This document shows positions 2,326 through 48,187 of a stretch of DNA of 64,000 nt, piece by piece. The translations under genes were made by a program, and so were the position numbers. Location of the stretch: IMG/VR virus record IMGVR_UViG_3300044680_000280, positions 248,001-312,000 of that record. One strand, given 5' to 3'. Position 1 is the first letter of the stretch. Each line of letters begins with the position of its first letter. The notes under the pieces are model-generated. The model saw only the letters and a list, made by a program, of their open reading frames with translations, searched no databases and was not told where the DNA came from.

Positions 2326-3159
2326 CTACACCGTCATCGTGCGCTCCTCGTGAACGAATTTCATGAGCACCGTCTTGATCTTGGGTTCGTAGATGGCTTT
2401 CCACGACTTGTAGGGCGCCTTGAGACCCTCCGCCTTGAGGTGGGGCAGCATGACGTCTTCCGTCTGCGCATGAGCCTTGAATCCGAGAATCTCAGCCGGA
2501 GTGTACCCCTCCATGAGGAGGTCGAGGTACAGGGGAGCGTCCGGATGCACGTGTTGCAGTGCCTGTCGGACCTTCGGAAGCACACTGGTCGGTAGATTGT
2601 GGTAGAAGTTTGCTTCGGACTCTGGGTCCCCCATCTGCATCGTGGGGTTTCCCTCCTCGTCGGTGTTGTCGATGGACGGACCGAAGTCATACTTCTTGCG
2701 CTTCGTCTTCTGAATGTCCGAGAGGACAACGTAGTTCAAGCTCTTCAAGAGGTACCTGAACACCTCTCCCAGCTTCGCCCCCTCCCTCAGCTCTTTCCAC
2801 CCACCTTCGACCACGAAGGCGAATAGCCAATTCGAGATAGCGACGTCGACTAACTGCTCGGAGTGGTATTTGGCGAGCAGACTCTTTCGGAGGTCCGCAG
2901 CAAAACCCCGAAGGTAATCCGCAGGAAGGAGTTTCGTCGGGTCCTTGTGCTGATCCACCGGAAATTCAAGTGCCGGCTTCCCGTGGATGTCGGGCAAGTC
3001 CTGAATCTTCTTGCGGATAAAAATGACCCCTAAAGATCGGCCGAGAGCCTGGAGTTCCACTCCTGAGAGGGACGCGATTACGTAAGCCAGTCGCATCCCG
3101 AGCGGGAGCGATGCAAAGATAGCTCGGGTTACACGTACCCCCCGACTTCGTACTTCCAT
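2326..3159 (-). CDS. divergent sigma-factor-like protein
   Basis: Region-2-like VFRYLLKSLNYVVLSDIQKTKRK; region-4-like LYLDLLMEGYTPAEI; adjacent to a second sigma-like gene. Confidence 0.45.
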   Translation of the reverse strand: MEVRSRGVRVTRAIFASLPLGMRLAYVIASLSGVELQALGRSLGVIFIRKKIQDLPDIHGKPALEFPVDQHKDPTKLLPADYLRGFAADLRKSLLAKYHSEQLVDVAISNWLFAFVVEGGWKELREGAKLGEVFRYLLKSLNYVVLSDIQKTKRKKYDFGPSIDNTDEEGNPTMQMGDPESEANFYHNLPTSVLPKVRQALQHVHPDAPLYLDLLMEGYTPAEILGFKAHAQTEDVMLPHLKAEGLKAPYKSWKAIYEPKIKTVLMKFVHEERTMTV

Positions 3160-3194: not shown

Positions 3195-4322
3195 TCAGGC
3201 CATCGACGAGACGAAGATGTTTTCCTCTGCCAATTCCACATCTTCCTCAATGGTTACCGACTCTTCCATCAGGTCGTCGGTAATGACCTGATCCTCGGCA
3301 CCCGGAGTAGGACGCATTTGAATCTGTCGACGCTCGCGGGCGATGCGGACCCAAGGACGGAGCAGACGTTGAGTGAGGCGGAGGTCATCCGGAGATAGCT
3401 CGAGCTTGCGGACAGCTTCCTCGATGTCGTACCCTTCATTGATGAACTCGAAGATCTCTTCCGCACGGGCGGCGGCGGGACTCTTGGAGATCTCCCGGAG
3501 CAGAAGGCTGAGTTCGGCACGGGCTTCTTGATTGCAGGGGGTCTTATCCGGCAGTCGGCTTTCCCAGGAGAGGGAGTCCTCGACGAGCGGGCGGAGCTCC
3601 TGGAAGGTGTCCCAAACGCGCTCCTTGTTGTGTCGCTCCTCACCTCGGCAAAAGTTCTTGAAGCGATTGTGCACCGTCTTTGAAAGGTAGTTCTGAAAAT
3701 GCCGCCGGCTCTTGGGGACGATCGTGTTGTGGTCGAGCATGACCGCGTCCTCGAAGTACTCCATCTCACCGAGTCGAATGACCGCCGCGAGATTGTAGGT
3801 AGTGTGCTTGGAGTCCGCCTTGCCCTTCAAAGGAAGGACCATCCAAGGCTCCCGGGGAACCGTCGCAACGAACGTCTTGATCGCGTCACGAAACCGTTCC
3901 CACGTGATTCCAAGGGCCTTGTGGGCTTGTTCCCCGGTGATCGTCTCCGGAACGACGACGTTGCTCTGCTCGAGAAATCGTTCGATCGCGCGGGCTTGCT
4001 TCAGTTGGAGAAAGATCTCCTGAACGATGTCACGCGTTCGGCTGTTCGCCGTGACCTTGTTGTAACGACTGATCAGGTGAACGACGAGGGCGCCGTAGAG
4101 GCGAATGAACTGGTCGTACACTTCGCGCTTGTCGAGAGACCGTATGTCGAAAATGGCCTGAATGTAGTCAGCGTAAATCGGGTCGAACGTTTCGGATTCC
4201 ACCTCGGAGCTTCGATGTCGTCGAACCTTTCGAATTCCTGTGATCTCGTCTTGGAAATCCTCCGCATCAGGTGCGTCGGGGGTGAGATTGACGACGTTCG
4301 AGGCTTGGTTTCGAATTGACAT
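3195..4322 (-). CDS. ECF-like sigma factor with insertion in region 2
   Basis: DIVQEIFLQL (2.2-like), FQNYLSKTVHNRFKNFCR (2.3/2.4-like), FEFINEGYDIEEAVRKLELS (region 4-like). Confidence 0.65.
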   Translation of the reverse strand: MSIRNQASNVVNLTPDAPDAEDFQDEITGIRKVRRHRSSEVESETFDPIYADYIQAIFDIRSLDKREVYDQFIRLYGALVVHLISRYNKVTANSRTRDIVQEIFLQLKQARAIERFLEQSNVVVPETITGEQAHKALGITWERFRDAIKTFVATVPREPWMVLPLKGKADSKHTTYNLAAVIRLGEMEYFEDAVMLDHNTIVPKSRRHFQNYLSKTVHNRFKNFCRGEERHNKERVWDTFQELRPLVEDSLSWESRLPDKTPCNQEARAELSLLLREISKSPAAARAEEIFEFINEGYDIEEAVRKLELSPDDLRLTQRLLRPWVRIARERRQIQMRPTPGAEDQVITDDLMEESVTIEEDVELAEENIFVSSMA

Positions 4323-5014: not shown

Positions 5015-5516
5015 GGGCCCTGCCTTCGGGAACCGTTGCCGTTCCATCGTGTCGTGTCGGGCCCCCTTCGGGGCCGTTATCTGTTTGTCTTCGAGGTACT
5101 GTTCTCTACGGGACTGTTTCTACGGTCGTTGTTTGAATCGTGGTTGTTTGTGTTGTTGCGGTTGCGGTTGCGGTTGTTACGATCATCATCAGTGACATCA
5201 GAACCTCACCCATCCGTTCTCTCTTATATTTGATACCATCTAACCAACTGTGATCCCTGAGGATACATTGGATCGAAGATCTCCACAGGTGGAACAATGA
5301 TGTCCCACCTCTATAAGGTCGCTACCTGGACGTTCCGCTCCTTCCCGTGAGGGAAAGAGAAGGCCAGCCTGACTTGGGGATGTGTTGCTACGAGTGAGCA
5401 TTCGCGTCTCACTGTAGGACCGTAACTCCGGTACGTCAAGCTCTTACCTTTTAGGTGAGGTGGGACATCGACAGAGAACTCTTGGAAGGGTAGCCTCTGG
5501 TGTAAGGAATCTCATC

Positions 5517-5834
5517 ATGATGACGTTACTGGAATTCTCGGATGTGAATGGGAAACCCCAGGTTAAGATCGATCTTCCGCCGCTTCTCATGGGATCGAAG
5601 GTGCGGTTGCACCTTAGTCTTCAGCGTACGAGTGGGGCTCGAAATGAGATCCTCGTCGTTGACGGACAGTTTCGAGTCGCTGCGGTCGGTGTAGATGCAG
5701 GATGTTCTCCACAGAGACAGGTGGTTTCCGTGGAATCTCTGAACGTCACCCCGACGTGGCGGTCGATCAAGAAAACAGTTGAATGGAGGCGTGCGCTTCC
5801 CCCTGTGAGGGCTCCGCGCACGATTGTTGAATGA
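5517..5834 (+). CDS. hypothetical protein
   Basis: GGTGTA 5499-5504 and AGGA before ATG 5517. Confidence 0.65.
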   Translation: MMTLLEFSDVNGKPQVKIDLPPLLMGSKVRLHLSLQRTSGARNEILVVDGQFRVAAVGVDAGCSPQRQVVSVESLNVTPTWRSIKKTVEWRRALPPVRAPRTIVE

Positions 5835-6136
5835 GGATCACACCGATTGAACCGGAGGCTCTACGGGGTCTTCCACGCACGATCTCGATGGGAGGAACGA
5901 AGCACGTCTCGGTCTACCACGGGACGCCCCTCGAGATGGTCCGCAGCATGGCTTCTGAGATGGGGTTGGGTACGGACGTACACGAAGCCGTCTCCACACT
6001 ACTAGACGCTCTGGGGCGCAACCGCGGCGTTCTGATCGCCATCCCTGAGGATGCTCCCGAGGACGTCGTCGCAACCCTCTTCGTTTACGCGCTCCTCGAC
6101 TCGGGTGTCTCTCGGGCGGTTACGGCTGAGAGCTGA
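5831..6136 (+). CDS. hypothetical protein
   Basis: ATGA overlap with upstream gene. Confidence 0.65.
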   Translation: MRITPIEPEALRGLPRTISMGGTKHVSVYHGTPLEMVRSMASEMGLGTDVHEAVSTLLDALGRNRGVLIAIPEDAPEDVVATLFVYALLDSGVSRAVTAES

Positions 6137-6749
6137 ACATTTTGAACGCCTGGGACTCTACAGGTCCCTCTGCGAGGTTTTCCTTGTACTTCCCAGTCTG
6201 TGAGTACAATTTTTCAACCTCACCCGAAATAGTGTGGAAACGAACCTGACCGATTCTCATGCCAGGGTATAGACGTACGGGGTAAGTGCAGGTAACCTCT
6301 AAAGTTAGCTGACCCGAAAACCCGGGGTCACAGAAGCCAGCGGTTTCATGGATGCTCACAAAAAGTCGCCCGATACTGCTCTTTCCGTCGAGCACGGGGA
6401 CAAACTCGTCGGTGCTGATCCGCTCCTTAGTGTGCATCAAGTAGCCGATCCCGGGTTTCAGGACCCAACCCTCGACTGGGTCGATCCTGAACCGACGGAT
6501 CTTGTTCGGCTTCCGAACGTCGAGGATGGCGGACTTAAAGCCATAGATGGGAACGAGGTTTCGACCGTCGGGGACCTCGTCAGCACCAGACGGAAGCGAG
6601 TAAGTTACAGCCTCGTACACCGCGACGTGCTCACCGAGGGTGACGTCGTAGCTCGTGGGGTTGACCTGGTCGGGGTCGAACGGGTCGATTTTGATACGAA
6701 ACTCGCTAATCGCGTTAAGAATGCCCCGATCGGAGAGAATGCCGTCCAT
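6120..6749 (-). CDS. dcd: dCTP deaminase
   Basis: QVNPTSYDVTLG, GKSSIGRL, AGFCDPGFSGQLTLE, GMRIGQ; start set at ATG 6749, 11 nt after GGTGTA. Confidence 0.92.
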   Translation of the reverse strand: MDGILSDRGILNAISEFRIKIDPFDPDQVNPTSYDVTLGEHVAVYEAVTYSLPSGADEVPDGRNLVPIYGFKSAILDVRKPNKIRRFRIDPVEGWVLKPGIGYLMHTKERISTDEFVPVLDGKSSIGRLFVSIHETAGFCDPGFSGQLTLEVTCTYPVRLYPGMRIGQVRFHTISGEVEKLYSQTGKYKENLAEGPVESQAFKMFSSQP

Positions 6750-6973
6750 GGTGTCCATACTACACCGCTCATCCCTCCCGACATGATCATATCCCACAGT
6801 ATCATGTTCGATTCCAGTGTCACCGCCCGGGTCTTTGTGAAGCGTTACTACCTCGAGCTGAGGCACCCGTGTCTGGTGGAGGACGAGGTGGTGCACATTG
6901 TGCTCCCAAAAAGTGACTTTGAGGCCGCGAGTTTACTTGCCGCCGACCTCAACGGGAGCATACTCTATGCAGA

Positions 6974-7492
6974 ATGGTAGATACGTTGTCATTACGTTAC
7001 TGGCCGGACCCGGTGCTGAACAAAAAGTGCGCTGAGGTTCCGGAGGTCACCGACGAGATCCGTGCCGTTGCCAAGGGCATGCTTGACATCATGTACAAGC
7101 AGGGCGGAATCGGTCTGGCGGCCCCGCAAGTCGGGCGACTCATCCGGATGATCGTCGTGGACGTTTGGTGGCCGAAAACGGGCGCGCGAAATCCCCGGGT
7201 CTTCATCAATCCACTACTGACACTGGGCGAGGAGAAGGAACGAGCTCGCGAGGGTTGTCTATCCCTCCCGGGTATCACGGACTTTGTCACGAGATCAAAG
7301 AGTGTTCAGGTTCACGCGCTGGATGAGCATGGCAAGCCCGTCATGCAACACGCGGACGGACTTCTTGCGGTTTGCCTCCAGCACGAGTGTGAGCACCTCG
7401 ACGGTATCACGCTTGTCGAGCACATGGGGCGGGCGAACCGTCGGATCCTAAAAAAGCAAATGCAGTCCAAGCGACCGCCCCGTCCGGTGTAA
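6974..7492 (+). CDS. def: peptide deformylase
   Basis: GIGLAAPQVG, EGCLS, QHECEHLDG motifs. Confidence 0.95.
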   Translation: MVDTLSLRYWPDPVLNKKCAEVPEVTDEIRAVAKGMLDIMYKQGGIGLAAPQVGRLIRMIVVDVWWPKTGARNPRVFINPLLTLGEEKERAREGCLSLPGITDFVTRSKSVQVHALDEHGKPVMQHADGLLAVCLQHECEHLDGITLVEHMGRANRRILKKQMQSKRPPRPV

Positions 7493-18640: not shown

Positions 18641-18862
18641 ATGAATCCCCTCAAACAACGAGAACAAATCCTCGTCGACTTTCTCTGTTTCATGCTGTTT
18701 GGACTCGTACTGTTCTTATTCGGAGGAGTCCCCCTTGTTCGTATGATTGGTGCCACGATCATCGCAAGCACCATCATCATTCACGGGTATGTCCAAATGC
18801 GGCTCTGCCAACAGATTGAGAAAGACGGTTACGATTCAGTAACCGGGGAGAAGAAGTCGTGA
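18641..18862 (+). CDS. small two-TM membrane protein
   Basis: Two hydrophobic segments; sits between permease and ATPase. Confidence 0.6.
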   Translation: MNPLKQREQILVDFLCFMLFGLVLFLFGGVPLVRMIGATIIASTIIIHGYVQMRLCQQIEKDGYDSVTGEKKS

Positions 18863-19680
18863 GTCAGGTCTGTGAACGCAAAGAAGTTCTCGTCAAGCTC
18901 GACAACATCTCCCTATCCTTTGACGGGCGGCCGGTTCTCTCCGACATCAACGCGGAAGTTCGGGACATCGTTCGTCCAGGTTGCGTGACGGGTCAGGTCG
19001 TAGGAATCCTCGGCCCGAGCGGTGTGGGAAAAACTCAGCTCTCGCGAATCATGACTGGACTCATGGAGCCAACGACGGGCGCCGTACGAGTCGGCGTCAG
19101 GCTCGAACCGATCCACGCTGGACTTGTTGGCTACGTTGCCCAGAACTACCCTCTTCTCCGTCACCGGACCGTGCTCGGGAATCTCATGGTTGCCGCTCGT
19201 CGTTCGGGCCTGAGCTCCGACGGGGCAAAGGATAAGGCGATGGGATACCTCGGCATGTTTGGACTCCAAGACAAGTGGGACGCTTATCCCGCTCAGTTAT
19301 CGGGTGGACAGCGCCAACGAATCGCCATTGCCCAGCAGCTTCTATGCTCGGAGCACTTCCTCATTCTGGATGAGCCAACAACGGGACTCGATCCCATCAT
19401 GAAGGACAAGGTCTGCGGTTTCATTCGTCAGGTTGCCAGCCTCTACGAGGAGAACACGATCTTCGTCATCACTCACGACATCTCGGCGATCCTCACGATT
19501 GCTGACACACTTTGGGTCCTCGGGCGCCGTAAGGACGCGGCGGGCAACGCCATCGGGGCGACCATCGTCAAGACTTACGACCTCATCGAACGTGGCATCG
19601 CCTGGGAAACGGACGTCGCCACCACCCCGCAGTACCGCGACGCTCAACGAGAGATTCGATCTCTATTTGAGACCCTCTAG
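18859..19680 (+). CDS. ABC transporter ATP-binding protein (TauB/SsuB-like)
   Basis: Walker A GPSGVGKT, LSGGQ, Walker B LILDEP, H-loop THD. Confidence 0.95.
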   Translation: MSQVCERKEVLVKLDNISLSFDGRPVLSDINAEVRDIVRPGCVTGQVVGILGPSGVGKTQLSRIMTGLMEPTTGAVRVGVRLEPIHAGLVGYVAQNYPLLRHRTVLGNLMVAARRSGLSSDGAKDKAMGYLGMFGLQDKWDAYPAQLSGGQRQRIAIAQQLLCSEHFLILDEPTTGLDPIMKDKVCGFIRQVASLYEENTIFVITHDISAILTIADTLWVLGRRKDAAGNAIGATIVKTYDLIERGIAWETDVATTPQYRDAQREIRSLFETL

Positions 19681-19998: not shown

Positions 19999-20604
19999 AT
20001 GTACCCGGATCAACTCGCACTCATCGACCTCGATAGTACGGTCGCGGATTATGATGCCGCCATGAAAGAGGAGATGCTGAAGCTCCAAGCACCGGAAGAA
20101 CCTCCGTACACGGGGCGTTACGAGAGTGACGCCGCCGAGCCCTCGTACATGGAAGCTCGTCGCAAGCTCATTCAACGCAAGCCCGGGTTTTGGCGGAACC
20201 TGAAGCCCCTCGAGCTCGGAATGGACCTTATCGAAGAGATTCGAACCGTCGGTTTCGAACTGCATGTGCTGACGAAGGGACCCAATAGCACCCCCGGGGC
20301 CTGGGGAGAAAAACTCGATTGGGTAAAGGAGCATCTCCCTGGGGTACCCGTGACGGTCACGTCTGACAAGAGCCTCGTCTACGGCCGCATTCTGGTCGAC
20401 GACTATCCACCGTACTTTCAAAAGTGGCTTCAAGTTCGACCGCGGGGGCTCGTCATCTGTGTGGCCCAACCCTGGAACACTGTCTACGGGGGGGACCCCA
20501 ATGTTTTTCGATACACTGGGGAATCAAACAATCGCGGGCTTCTTCGAAGCCTTCTCGATAGGGTGTTCAAGCGAAAGTCAGGAGAAACCTTTTACTCCGC
20601 CTGA
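19999..20604 (+). CDS. 5'(3')-deoxyribonucleotidase (NT5C-like HAD)
   Basis: IDLDSTVAD, W..K..WV..HL, LVDDYP. Confidence 0.8.
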   Translation: MYPDQLALIDLDSTVADYDAAMKEEMLKLQAPEEPPYTGRYESDAAEPSYMEARRKLIQRKPGFWRNLKPLELGMDLIEEIRTVGFELHVLTKGPNSTPGAWGEKLDWVKEHLPGVPVTVTSDKSLVYGRILVDDYPPYFQKWLQVRPRGLVICVAQPWNTVYGGDPNVFRYTGESNNRGLLRSLLDRVFKRKSGETFYSA

Positions 20605-21679: not shown

Positions 21680-22261
21680 CTACCGTGACTTGATGTAGTT
21701 CTTCCGTGGAATGTCCGCGAGTCTATTGACAATGTCCAAGTTGTTTGAACGCACGGCCGCCGACAGATTGACCGAGACCCTGCGGTAGTAGGGAGATTCG
21801 AGCCATTCTGCGTAGGGGGTGTTGCCTCGAGCCTTGTTGCACTTCCGGCACGACGCCAGAAGGTTGTCCGGGGTACTCGGTCCTCCCTCTTCCCAGCAGA
21901 TAATGTGGTCGACAGTAAGAGGAACGTCATCTTTCCCGCAGTAGCAGCACTTGTAGGAGTCCCTCTTGAAAACCCTCCAAGAGATGTTCGCCTCGATAGT
22001 ACGGGCGCTCTTTCGGAGAATTGCCTTCTTGATGGTTCCGTCCCCCTCCCTTGCCGTGACCTCGGTTTCGAGCGTGTCCAGTTGGGTCATGAGCTTCTGC
22101 CAGTCCTCAACTCCCATACTGAGGTTTTCTAGCTCTGCTGTAAGATCCCGCTCTTCCGGAAAGAGGGCCAAAAAGGCTCGTCCTTCCCCCGCGTAGACAA
22201 CACCTACCATACCCACGGTGTGCCCAAATTTCAGCAGGTCCAGTTGGGAAAGTTTCACCAT
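21680..22261 (-). CDS. HNH endonuclease
   Basis: RDSYKCCYCG...LTVDHII...GG...NLLASCRKCNKARG. Confidence 0.92.
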   Translation of the reverse strand: MVKLSQLDLLKFGHTVGMVGVVYAGEGRAFLALFPEERDLTAELENLSMGVEDWQKLMTQLDTLETEVTAREGDGTIKKAILRKSARTIEANISWRVFKRDSYKCCYCGKDDVPLTVDHIICWEEGGPSTPDNLLASCRKCNKARGNTPYAEWLESPYYRRVSVNLSAAVRSNNLDIVNRLADIPRKNYIKSR

Positions 22262-22307: not shown

Positions 22308-22418
22308 AGCGGCTGCCTCGAATCGAACGAGGGACCTCCGGACTAACTACTCCGGTGCTCTTCCATCGGCCCTACTTCCCTGGCGCCAGGCTTTCGAACC
22401 TCGCTGAGCTACAGCCGC
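22308..22418 (-). tRNA. atypical tRNA-like gene (45-nt D-loop, 8-nt anticodon loop, no encoded CCA); identity unassignable
   Basis: Acceptor GCGGCTG/CAGCCGC, D stem GCTC/GAGC, anticodon stem CCGGA/TCCGG, variable AGGTC, T arm CCTCG-TTCGATT-CGAGG; GGTGTA 12 nt upstream. Confidence 0.8.
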
Positions 22419-22464
22419 ACTCTTGACAATTACACCGGTTCTCTACTTGTGCCCTCACTCGAGT

Positions 22465-23250
22465 ATGACAACGACTCGCAAAGTTCAACGCTACGGATGG
22501 GTCCCCGACCTTCCGGACCATCGAGACCATCTCTACGCCGCTCCCAGCCCCGTGCTAGCGGCCCTTCCCCCGTCAGTCGACCTTCGCCCCAACTGCCCCG
22601 CCGTCTACGACCAAGGTCAATTGGGAAGCTGCACCGCTAATGCAATCGGTGCTGCGTTCGAGTTCGACCAGATCAAGGAAAAACTTCCTCATGTCTGGAG
22701 GCCATCGCGCCTGTTCATTTACTACAACGAGCGTTCCATCGAGGGCACCGTGTCGCAGGACGCAGGAGCTCAAATTCGAGACGGCATCAAAAGCGTTGCG
22801 TCCCAGGGCGCTTGCTCCGAAGACCTCTGGCCGTACGACATCACGAAGTTTGCGGATCAGCCACCGGCGGACACCTACACGAACGCCTCGAAGCATCTCG
22901 TGACGAGCTACCAGTCGGTTGCTCAGGACGCGCAACAGATCAAGGGCTGCCTCGCCTCGGGTTACCCCGTAGTTTTCGGCTTCACGGTCTACTCGGACTT
23001 CGAGTCTCAGCAGGTTGCATCGACCGGCGTCGTCAACATGCCGACCTCGAGTGAAACGGTCGTCGGTGGTCACGCGGTTCTCTGCGTTGGCTACGACGAC
23101 TCGACGAGCCAGTTCATCGTTCGCAATTCTTGGGGCAACGGGTGGGGTCTCAACGGGTACTTCCTCTTCCCGTACCAGTATCTCCTCAGTTCGAGCCTCG
23201 CGTCCGACCTGTGGACCGTTAGATTCGTACAGGGTACACCGAACTCGTAA
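22465..23250 (+). CDS. papain-family (C1A) cysteine protease
   Basis: YDQGQLGSCTANA (Gln/Cys), GGHAV (His), IVRNSWG (Asn); N-terminal YGWVPDLPDHRD. Confidence 0.95.
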   Translation: MTTTRKVQRYGWVPDLPDHRDHLYAAPSPVLAALPPSVDLRPNCPAVYDQGQLGSCTANAIGAAFEFDQIKEKLPHVWRPSRLFIYYNERSIEGTVSQDAGAQIRDGIKSVASQGACSEDLWPYDITKFADQPPADTYTNASKHLVTSYQSVAQDAQQIKGCLASGYPVVFGFTVYSDFESQQVASTGVVNMPTSSETVVGGHAVLCVGYDDSTSQFIVRNSWGNGWGLNGYFLFPYQYLLSSSLASDLWTVRFVQGTPNS

Positions 23251-26244: not shown

Positions 26245-26283
26245 TTCGGGGTGGGCTTCACCGCCCCGGTGTATTGAAGGGGT

Positions 26284-30331: not shown

Positions 30332-30445
30332 GGGTCTCGTAATTGACCCACCTGAGCCACAGACCCACAACTGTTCTGAAGACTAACCTTGCAACCAAGC
30401 AAGGCTCCACTCTTTAGACTTGTGGGTCTCTGTCTTTAACGGCTC
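30332..30445 (+). ncRNA. candidate structured small RNA
   Basis: Starts 10 nt after GGTGTA 30316-30321 with no ORF; 5' hairpin plus long interrupted stem. Confidence 0.45.
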
Positions 30446-30462
30446 GGTGTAGTGGGTTCGGT

Positions 30463-30966
30463 ATGTCGTACGAAACTGATCCGAAAGTTCACAGGTGGGA
30501 TCTCCGTTACCTGGAGGCGGCCAAGCACTTTGCTCAGTGGAGCAAAGATCCGAGCACAAAGGTCGGAGCCGTCATTGTTACGAGACAACAGACCTACTCC
30601 GGCGACCTCTTGGATCTGAGAAAGATCGATATGGGCCGGATCGTTTCGGTCGGATACAACGGATTCGCACGGGGCATCAAGGACTCAGATGATCGCCTCA
30701 ACAATCGGGAGCTCAAGTACAAGATGGTTGTTCATGGGGAGCGAAACGCCATGCTCTACGCCCAGCGGGATCTCACCGGTTGCACGCTTTACACATGGCC
30801 TTTCATGCCGTGCGCCCCCTGCGCCGCCATGACGATTCAAACGGGAATCAAGCGGGTCGTGGCACCAAAAAACGACAATCCTCGTTGGGTGGAGGACTTC
30901 CAAATCACACGAACGATGTTCAGGGAAGCTATGGTAGAGCTGGTCGAAAAGGAGATTGAACTATGA
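30463..30966 (+). CDS. dCMP deaminase
   Basis: SKDPSTKVGAVI, GYNG, VVHGERNA, PCAPCA. Confidence 0.93.
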   Translation: MSYETDPKVHRWDLRYLEAAKHFAQWSKDPSTKVGAVIVTRQQTYSGDLLDLRKIDMGRIVSVGYNGFARGIKDSDDRLNNRELKYKMVVHGERNAMLYAQRDLTGCTLYTWPFMPCAPCAAMTIQTGIKRVVAPKNDNPRWVEDFQITRTMFREAMVELVEKEIEL

Positions 30967-41483: not shown

Positions 41484-41511
41484 GCCCTAGAGATACACCG
41501 AAACGAGACTA

Positions 41512-48159: not shown

Positions 48160-48187
48160 GAAGTTCGCCTCGGTGTATCAGTAGGGC

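Follow-up and report, generated by a model that had tools for sequence, protein, structure and literature searches.

A tRNA-like gene of a huge phage carries a structured and covarying arm within its D-loop

The window analyzed here is a 64,000-nucleotide (nt) stretch of IMG/VR virus record IMGVR_UViG_3300044680_000280 (positions 248,001 to 312,000 of contig 3300044680_000280, which spans 406,734 base pairs (bp)). On its minus strand lies a gene for a transfer RNA (tRNA)-like RNA whose otherwise complete cloverleaf carries a 37-nt insert in the D-loop. We found four relatives that share this arrangement, and because compensatory changes occur in the insert hairpin as well as in all four tRNA stems, we conclude that the insert is no lesion but an RNA arm under selection. 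Judging from the sequences, these RNAs form a small family descended from a tRNA-Lys-type gene, and the window belongs to a phage of more than 400 kilobases (kb) with a bacterial host. The explanation we favor, to which we give a probability of only about 0.42, is that the RNA is a five-armed variant of the tRNA-Lys family for AAN- or AGA-type codons that has been hardened against tRNA-cutting defense nucleases.

By direct reading, minus-strand positions 22418 to 22308 form a cloverleaf in which all four stems are perfect. The 7-bp acceptor stem is followed by U8 and A9, the 4-bp D stem (GCUC/GAGC) surrounds a D-loop of 45 nt and is followed by A26, and the variable loop, AGGUC, has 5 nt. The stems have the dimensions expected from RF00005, the canonical elongator tRNA family in Rfam (acceptor 7 bp, anticodon 5 bp, T 5 bp with a UUCRA loop, D 3-4 bp), and the tertiary core is complete, including U8, A14, G15 with C48, G18G19, A21, the G53-C61 pair, and UUCGA. 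The D-loop, however, lies far outside the RF00005 range of ~7-11 nt, and the 8-nt anticodon loop GUAGUUAG departs from the canonical 7-nt loop with U33 and a purine at position 37. Position 16 of the D-loop is C. Since the discriminator U is followed in the genome by CUA, CCA is not encoded. When constrained to the cloverleaf, the window sequence folds at -45.7 kcal/mol, compared with -45.9 kcal/mol for its free minimum. A sequence-only reading of this DNA had already described the four perfect stems, the 45-nt D-loop, the 8-nt anticodon loop and the missing CCA exactly as we find them. Its span of 22308-22436 was right at the lower end, whereas the upper bound takes in an upstream motif and the RNA itself begins at 22418. 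The parts of the gene are as follows.

22308-22418, minus strand: tRNA-derived gene, 111 nt including discriminator U73 (direct reading)
22316-22332, minus strand: T arm CCUCG-UUCGAUU-CGAGG with a 5-bp stem (three fully compensated pair changes)
22338-22355, minus strand: anticodon arm with a 5-bp stem, CCGGA/UCCGG, and the 8-nt loop GUAGUUAG at 22343-22350 (direct reading)
22366-22402, minus strand: 37-nt insert, RNA nt 17-53, between D-loop C16 and U17 (deletion restores an ARAGORN call)
22368-22400, minus strand: basal helix of the insert, G19 G20 U21 (U22 C23) with (G47 G48) G49 C50 C51 (RNAalifold and constrained fold)
22379-22390, minus strand: apical hairpin of the insert, CCUG-GCGC-CAGG, RNA nt 29-40 (covariation)

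Standard searches pass over this gene. Default ARAGORN makes no call, and its intron, mitochondrial and low-threshold modes yield a forced, implausible parse and nothing else. Rfam does not report the gene even at E<=10, and Rfam searches of both the region and the whole window, at gathering thresholds and at permissive E-values, returned no family, ribozyme, intron or transfer-messenger RNA (tmRNA). If, however, the 37 nt running from GAGG to GGCCGA are deleted in silico, a canonical 8-nt D-loop is left, and ARAGORN then recognizes a tRNA of 75 nt, to which it assigns the four-base anticodon agtt. The same deletion restores a call in five of five family members. A covariance model of the family scores the window RNA at 120 bits (E ~7e-28) and the five members at 110-133 bits. 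Everything else remains at or below 66 bits, the best ordinary tRNAs being those for Lys and Arg(UCU).

The gene is also no product of faulty assembly. A 463,523-bp contig, assembled independently from a second sample (JGI 3300044797), matches the window with 100% identity along 281 nt that take in the gene, its flanks and the 8-nt loop, and an artefact is thereby ruled out. When 50,697 cultured phage genomes were searched by BLAST, neither the region nor the RNA gave a match, and a second viral scan, based on the 3' end of the insert and the T loop, gave chance matches in coding sequence only. Likewise, a scan of GTDB genomes for the family produced a single chance match in a coding sequence, from which we conclude that there is no cellular or prophage copy among them.

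Of the four relatives with a D-loop insert, two belong to other huge phages and two lie on metagenome contigs. They are listed here with the window copy, together with the call that ARAGORN makes once the insert is removed.

Window, 22308-22418, minus strand: agtt; loop GUAGUUAG
L003:5823-5934, in a 362,937-bp phage, upstream of the orthologous C1 peptidase gene and thus positioned as in the window: Lys(ctt); loop UACUUAA
L220:747-857, on a metagenome contig: Lys(ttt); loop CUUUUAG
L225:1115-1225, on a metagenome contig: Arg(tct); loop UAUCUAA
L231:5384-5493, in a different phage, within a tRNA array and with CCA encoded: Lys(ttt); loop UAUUUAA

The L003 sequence was found again in an independent Logan assembly (L244). 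Peptidase homologues were examined for further orthologues of the gene and gave one duplicate of L003, one precise absence and otherwise non-syntenic arrangements.

In the alignment of these five sequences, 96% of cells are paired, as against 33-47% when the partners are slid. Compensatory double changes are present in 11 of 25 pairs, a number that is reached by 0 of 500 shuffles, and they are spread over the acceptor, D, anticodon and T stems and the insert hairpin. The T stem is especially informative with respect to the window copy: it reads CCUCG/CGAGG there and GGACG/CGUCC in L003, L220 and L225, and on the window's own lineage three of its pairs have been replaced with full compensation (six substitutions). 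The acceptor stem and the discriminator are invariant in four family members. The earlier proposals that this is a genuine tRNA-scaffold gene under selection, and that its perfect stems speak against decay, are therefore borne out by covariation in all helices. The sequence-only reading had also named homologues as the way to recognize a lesion. Judged in this manner, the insert is kept and covaries in the relatives, whereas the 8-nt loop proves to be unique to the window phage.

Several features define the insert as a fifth arm. First, RNAalifold, when run unaided, returns the cloverleaf plus an arm in which an internal loop separates a basal helix (GGU/GCC) from an apical hairpin. Second, three of the five alignment pairs in the apical hairpin are altered on both sides, giving the variants CCUG/CAGG, CCCG/CGGG and UCCG/CGGA, and L231 has a hairpin of different sequence (GGGG.G/C.CCC) in the same alignment columns. 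Third, the basal helix shows one consistent change, U to C in L225, and tandem G.A pairs (G17A18/G52A53) may form at its foot. Fourth, conservation extends to AAGUAG, which forms the 3' side of the internal loop. Covariation thus upholds the original suggestion of a structured, conserved insert and favors CCUG-GCGC-CAGG together with GGU/GCC over the AGGUU-CGAA-AGCCU hairpin that had been drawn. In L220, L225 and L231, a search pattern that required both ends of the insert partly forced the conservation seen there; L003 was found independently of that pattern, through synteny and a D-stem pattern. The insertion site, 16/17, is the one D-loop position whose bases are solvent-exposed. We infer that mature molecules retain the arm and do not lose it by splicing, which would make the RNA a five-armed tRNA. 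An alternative parse in the style of class II tRNAs, in which the insert would serve as the anticodon arm, was considered and is impossible here because the hairpin loop has only 4 nt.

The anticodon arm evolves very differently. L003 and L220 are 89% identical over 1.5 kb, and while their flanks differ by 11%, the RNAs differ by ~40% in the anticodon arm and by ~3% elsewhere. The arm nevertheless remains paired, and it therefore outpaces neutral flanks under a pairing constraint. The anticodons of the relatives are those of Lys (UUU or CUU) and Arg (UCU), and that of the window copy is readable as GUU or AGUU. Lys, Asn, Thr, Tyr and Arg are isotypes that defense nucleases target. Common to all five members is Y35-U36-A37-R38, the signature of tRNAs for codons that start with A (ANN). 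The loop of L220 is fully canonical, and relative to it the window loop looks as if it had gained one base, with U34 replaced by AG to give GUAGUUAG. With 7-nt loops in all four relatives, the 8-nt loop is a peculiarity of the window phage, whose copy would be expected to decode AAC/AAU at best poorly or oddly.

If the RNA is a five-armed tRNA of this kind, transcription would begin a few bases upstream of it, from a CGGTGTA element, and the host's ribonuclease P, 3' trimming and CCA addition would finish its ends. The arm would cover the flipped-out nucleotides at 16/17 of the D-loop, and the anticodon arm would change rapidly while staying paired, so that together they would address both sites that the nuclease AriB reportedly reads. 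With host tRNAs cut, such an RNA could take over the decoding of AAN codons. Arm retention, aminoacylation, decoding and nuclease evasion are all steps that we infer from the sequences. AriB, the nuclease of the PARIS system, cleaves the tRNAs for Lys (UUU), Thr (UGU) and Asn (GUU), recognizes the anticodon stem-loop and makes base-specific contacts with D-loop nucleotides U16-U17, and phage T5's tRNA-Lys escapes it through U39A, A41C and U16C (PMC11464382; PMC12409363). More generally, phage tRNAs have been proposed to evade anticodon nucleases by means of loop changes (PMC10264068). Set against these determinants, the window RNA has its insert at 16/17, C at position 16 and a hypervariable anticodon arm, although the PARIS work concerns an E. 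coli system that may not be this host's.

The family is not alone. Our class survey combined a scan of viral contigs with a strict structural filter that gave 0 matches in ~1 megabase of shuffled DNA, and it recovered at least ~30 distinct, mutually unrelated tRNA-like genes with D-loop inserts of 20-100 nt, many of them in phage tRNA arrays. D-loop-arm tRNAs are thus widespread in phage metagenomes, and they seem to be undescribed, since the literature we searched held no relevant description of D-loop insertions or extra arms in phage tRNAs. ARAGORN misses or mis-parses the genes of this class; at L113 and L117 it parses the insert as an anticodon arm, and we treat these two as ambiguous. 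BLAST of two other D-loop-arm tRNAs gave only generic matches to 3' halves of tRNAs. Examples among L106-L218 are the following.

L121:1173-1272
L138:9768-9863
L168:2235-2329
L184:11813-11922, minus strand
L204:2407-2503, minus strand

A second, unrelated family bears a D-loop hairpin after G18G19 in which six of seven pairs covary. Because its members keep canonical anticodon loops (Glu, Lys, Ala, Arg), retained D-loop arms seem to be compatible with decoding. Other members of the class have perfect stems and anticodon loops of 4-6 nt (L108, L119, L120, L122, L127, L130, L146, L155, L162, L208, L214 and L047); the loop of L120 is a UUCG-type tetraloop, C-UUCG-G. From their sequences, tRNA-like RNAs with such short loops would be unable to decode.

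Several odd arrangements were encountered during the survey. L231 is a 9-kb metagenome contig that has a tmRNA gene along with a dense array of unusual tRNA-like genes (regions L231:2800-3176 and 5100-7000). Three tandem genes in this array have D-loop inserts and CCA, one gene combines a 100-nt insert with a Leu(UAA)-type loop, and another has the 6-nt loop UUUUAA. At L162:965-1080 and 4028-4143, two tRNA-like genes have normal D arms, but their anticodon loop is replaced by ~48-50 nt of structured sequence, which is too short for a group I intron; Rfam nevertheless recognizes both as tRNA, with 44-45 bits. Finally, a tRNA-Arg(UCU) with a D-loop insert in L129 is accompanied by two oddities (L129:1085-1261 and 1371-1444), one being a tRNA with a normal D-loop and an 8-nt anticodon loop, AUCUAGAA, for which ARAGORN reports the anticodon 'ctag', and the other a 177-nt tRNA-like RNA with a D-loop insert of ~110 nt.

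The strongest competitor to a working five-armed tRNA is a tRNA mimic that does not decode. In such an RNA, the cloverleaf would be a scaffold for processing or stability, or else bait for a protein that binds tRNAs, for instance a defense nuclease, synthetase or modification enzyme. Its activity would reside in the conserved D-loop arm or in the variable anticodon loop, and the RNA would never enter the ribosome. Many observations weigh on this side and against our preferred explanation. The window copy has its 8-nt loop, three of the four relatives have A33 instead of the near-universal U33, and three have a mismatch at 27:43 (C.U or U.C). Bacterial tRNA-Lys has A73 as its discriminator, whereas the window RNA has U73. 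Within the insert, sequence (for example AAGUAG and GGGCCGA) is better conserved than the stems, so that specific binding fits the arm equally as well as shielding does. The cassette that holds the gene is dispensable, as described below, and other tRNA-like genes of phage arrays carry ~48 nt in place of an anticodon loop. The comparison with AriB draws on an E. coli system and in part on an AlphaFold 3 model.

The class as a whole adds to this side of the balance. Among the matches listed, 17 of 32 D-loop-insert RNAs have anticodon loops of a length other than 7 nt, including UUCG-type tetraloops and others of 4-6 nt, compared with 3 of 195 equally well-formed tRNAs with normal D-loops from the same loci (p=3e-14). 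Where the insert lies 5' of G18G19, as it does in the window, 13 of 18 listed matches have such loops, compared with 2 of 12 otherwise (p=0.008), in a split that was classified manually and includes some related entries. The association of D-loop inserts with non-standard loops therefore points towards non-decoding RNAs.

Nevertheless, we consider a mimic possible and the less probable of the two for the family. A 7-nt loop with Y35-U36-A37-R38 is retained in four of the five members, one would expect an anticodon-nuclease decoy to preserve recognition features and not vary them, and the invariance of the acceptor stem and discriminator in four members is what an aminoacylation identity set would call for. 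It is because the L220 loop is canonical, the L231 copy encodes CCA within an array, and U36-A37 is kept throughout that we favor a working tRNA. For the window copy itself, given its 8-nt loop and the class-level association, a mimic comes close behind.

Far less credible is an intron-containing tRNA from which the 37 nt would be removed after transcription to give a normal 74-nt tRNA. The attraction of this proposal, which had been put forward from the sequence, is that deletion yields a canonical 8-nt D-loop and an ARAGORN call in every member. As had also been noted at the outset, however, no bulge-helix-bulge motif is present, and none can be drawn at the junctions. Since the host is bacterial, an archaeal-type splicing endonuclease is not expected, and the window, which covers 64 kb of at least 463 kb, revealed neither an RNA ligase gene nor one for splicing. 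The insert falls far short of a group I or group II intron, whose self-splicing core needs ~200 nt or more, and the Rfam search found no ribozyme. Instead, the insert is conserved, its helices covary like those of a retained, working arm, the tRNA core is intact, and the site tolerates extra nucleotides.

Similarly implausible is a decaying tRNA pseudogene, or a tRNA gene struck by a small DNA palindrome (CCNGGCGCCNGG), with an RNA that has no function. The aberrant loop, the missing CCA and the dispensable cassette would suit such a relic, and because the apical hairpin is a DNA palindrome, its symmetric changes could reflect constraint at the level of DNA. The six compensated T-stem substitutions on the window's own lineage make this unlikely, as do the compensated changes in every other helix, the retention of all core nucleotides and the conserved promoter motif; moreover, L231 has a hairpin of different sequence at the same place.

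We hold two forms of unconventional decoding to be the most improbable explanations. A dedicated +1 frameshift suppressor, as had been entertained from the sequence, would use the anticodon AGUU to read AACU as a quadruplet; a 5-bp stem without mismatches closes the 8-nt loop, ARAGORN assigns a four-base anticodon, and another tRNA with an 8-nt loop (AUCUAGAA) exists in the L129 phage array, but the 8-nt loop occurs in none of the four relatives and no candidate +1 site was identified. In-frame AAC|U sites, furthermore, are not avoided in window genes (n=56, 13.1% compared with a background of 14.9%, p=0.30), and efficient quadruplet reading would therefore be harmful. A stop suppressor with a shifted anticodon would exploit loops that end in YUA-R (UUA in four, CUA in one) to read UAA/UAG, which would give all orthologues one shared function and account for a conserved 3' half of the loop (Y-U-A-R) beside a 5' half that varies in sequence and length, but no stem register places YUA at 34-36, the pattern follows simply from Y35-U36-A37, and the window uses the standard code.

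The surroundings of the gene indicate how it is likely to be expressed and maintained. The relevant elements are these.

22431-22437, minus strand: CGGTGTA promoter-like motif, 12 nt upstream of the RNA 5' end
22465-23250, plus strand: divergent C1 papain-like peptidase gene (Pfam Peptidase_C1), the synteny anchor of the cassette
21680-22261, minus strand: HNH endonuclease gene (Pfam HNH, 1e-11), just downstream of the RNA gene, with its own TGGTGTA motif

The GGTGTA that had been pointed out 12 nt upstream is thus part of a promoter-like motif that belongs to the gene itself. CGGTGTA occurs 42 times in the whole window, where 4.8 copies are expected, mostly 9-12 nt before ATG start codons and often with a short GGG after it. 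Examples are the following.

26267-26273, plus strand: CGGTGTA
30445-30451, plus strand: CGGTGTA
48171-48177, plus strand: CGGTGTA
2327-2333, minus strand: CGGTGTA
41494-41500, minus strand: CGGTGTA

In L003, L220 and L225 the motif lies 9 nt upstream of the RNA. That it precedes a non-coding gene argues for a promoter element and not a ribosome-binding site, and it has the look of a promoter used by a transcription system specific to the phage, which would yield near-leaderless messenger RNAs. A protein with a weak sigma-70 region-2 match is encoded at 3195-4322 on the minus strand.

Motif and RNA gene together make up a 131-nt cassette that is exactly missing, between conserved flanks, from L247, a close relative represented by a 218-kb contig whose peptidase is 80% identical. 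This exact absence and the varied endonuclease genes at the site indicate that the RNA gene is an accessory cassette within a hotspot of mobile genes. The hotspot extends between a gene for a 234-amino-acid protein and the C1 peptidase gene. It is occupied by the HNH gene in the window, by a LAGLIDADG-like gene in L245/L246 (L245:1371-2564) and by an unrelated small open reading frame in L003 (L003:5396-5821), and L247 has neither an endonuclease gene nor the tRNA cassette there. We considered the HNH endonuclease as a functional partner of the RNA and rejected it in favor of a mobile neighbor, because it is absent from the site in L003 and other homing endonucleases occupy the site elsewhere. 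Contigs of 200-570 kb very commonly carry members of the C1 peptidase family, and homologues also sit inside the tRNA arrays of the huge phages L010, L019 and L022 (around position 6001 in each), where 21, 6 and 10 tRNAs, respectively, fall within 10-13 kb.

Products encoded in the window include an OmpA domain, a peptide deformylase, a sigma-70-like protein, an N6/N4 DNA methylase and enzymes of nucleotide metabolism. Because the OmpA, peptide deformylase and sigma-70-like functions are of bacterial type, we take the host to be a bacterium. Most other window genes have no Pfam match. Some of those that could be assigned are listed below.

7013-7492, plus strand: peptide deformylase
6120-6896, minus strand: dCTP deaminase-like
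30463-30966, plus strand: dCMP/cytidine deaminase
19999-20604, plus strand: NT5C nucleotidase
18859-19680, plus strand: ABC-type ATPase

A self-trained gene model predicts 101 genes that cover 83% of the window, and these end in TGA (57), TAG (24) or TAA (20), so that all three stops serve as terminators. No coding signal runs through in-frame stops within these 64 kb of a genome of at least 463 kb. The window uses the standard genetic code, and the normal use of all three stops rules out stop-codon recoding for it.

Phage tRNAs have lately been shown to neutralize bacterial immunity that cuts tRNAs, and in the examples known so far, only point changes set them apart from host tRNAs. A whole arm placed on the D-loop nucleotides that a nuclease contacts would, if our explanation is right, be a new structural answer to nuclease pressure and a new natural tRNA architecture, and the fast-evolving anticodon arm adds to this picture. 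It is conceivable, although we would not yet expect it, that huge phages and many others harbor an undescribed class of five-armed tRNAs and mimics, with a D-loop stem-loop and a hypervariable or truncated anticodon arm, and that the arm at 16/17 and the shifting anticodon arm jointly act as a counter-defense against tRNA-cutting immune nucleases. From the strong association of D-loop arms with non-standard anticodon loops, it seems that some of these RNAs no longer take part in translation and serve another purpose. In a bolder variant, the invariant Gly-like acceptor (G1-C72, C2-G71, G3-C70 and U73) would determine which amino acid is attached, the anticodon would shift among those for Lys, Asn and Arg codons, and the RNAs would be deliberate mis-decoders. 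Since the D-loop arm hides these genes from ARAGORN, and often from Rfam, phage tRNA counts, arguments from codon usage and catalogues of counter-defense genes may be systematically incomplete.

Several known systems invite comparison with this RNA. Class II tRNAs (Leu, Ser and bacterial Tyr) have a long variable arm at positions 44-48 that is a synthetase identity element, and in these naturally five-armed molecules the additional stem-loop covaries and stands out from the core, leaving the L-shape undisturbed; their arm lies between the anticodon and T arms, whereas here it is in the D-loop. Archaeal tRNAs can have non-canonical D-loop introns that are spliced at bulge-helix-bulge motifs. 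Here too a short D-loop insert is present whose removal restores a standard tRNA, but the host is bacterial, the splicing motif is missing and the insert is conserved like a functional arm. The frameshift suppressors sufD and sufJ, which are laboratory or rare mutants of normal tRNAs, share an 8-nt anticodon loop in an otherwise intact tRNA, whereas the extra base in the window copy is specific to one lineage of a family with 7-nt loops and occurs together with a D-loop arm. In the tRNA-like domain of tmRNA and in the Y-RNA-like YrlA, a large extra domain replaces the anticodon arm. These are likewise tRNA mimics that keep the acceptor and T arms, but in the RNA studied here all four tRNA arms are complete and Rfam gives no match. 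The nearest parallel for the explanation we favor, a five-armed tRNA hardened against nucleases, is perhaps the tRNA-Lys(UUU) of phage T5, which is also a phage-encoded RNA of the Lys family, differs in its anticodon stem-loop from the sensitive form, has C16 and could likewise serve AAN codons once host tRNAs have been cut (PMC11464382; PMC12409363). The T5 RNA is an ordinary 76-nt tRNA with point substitutions, whereas the RNAs described here have a 37-nt arm, often A33 and, in the window copy, an 8-nt anticodon loop.

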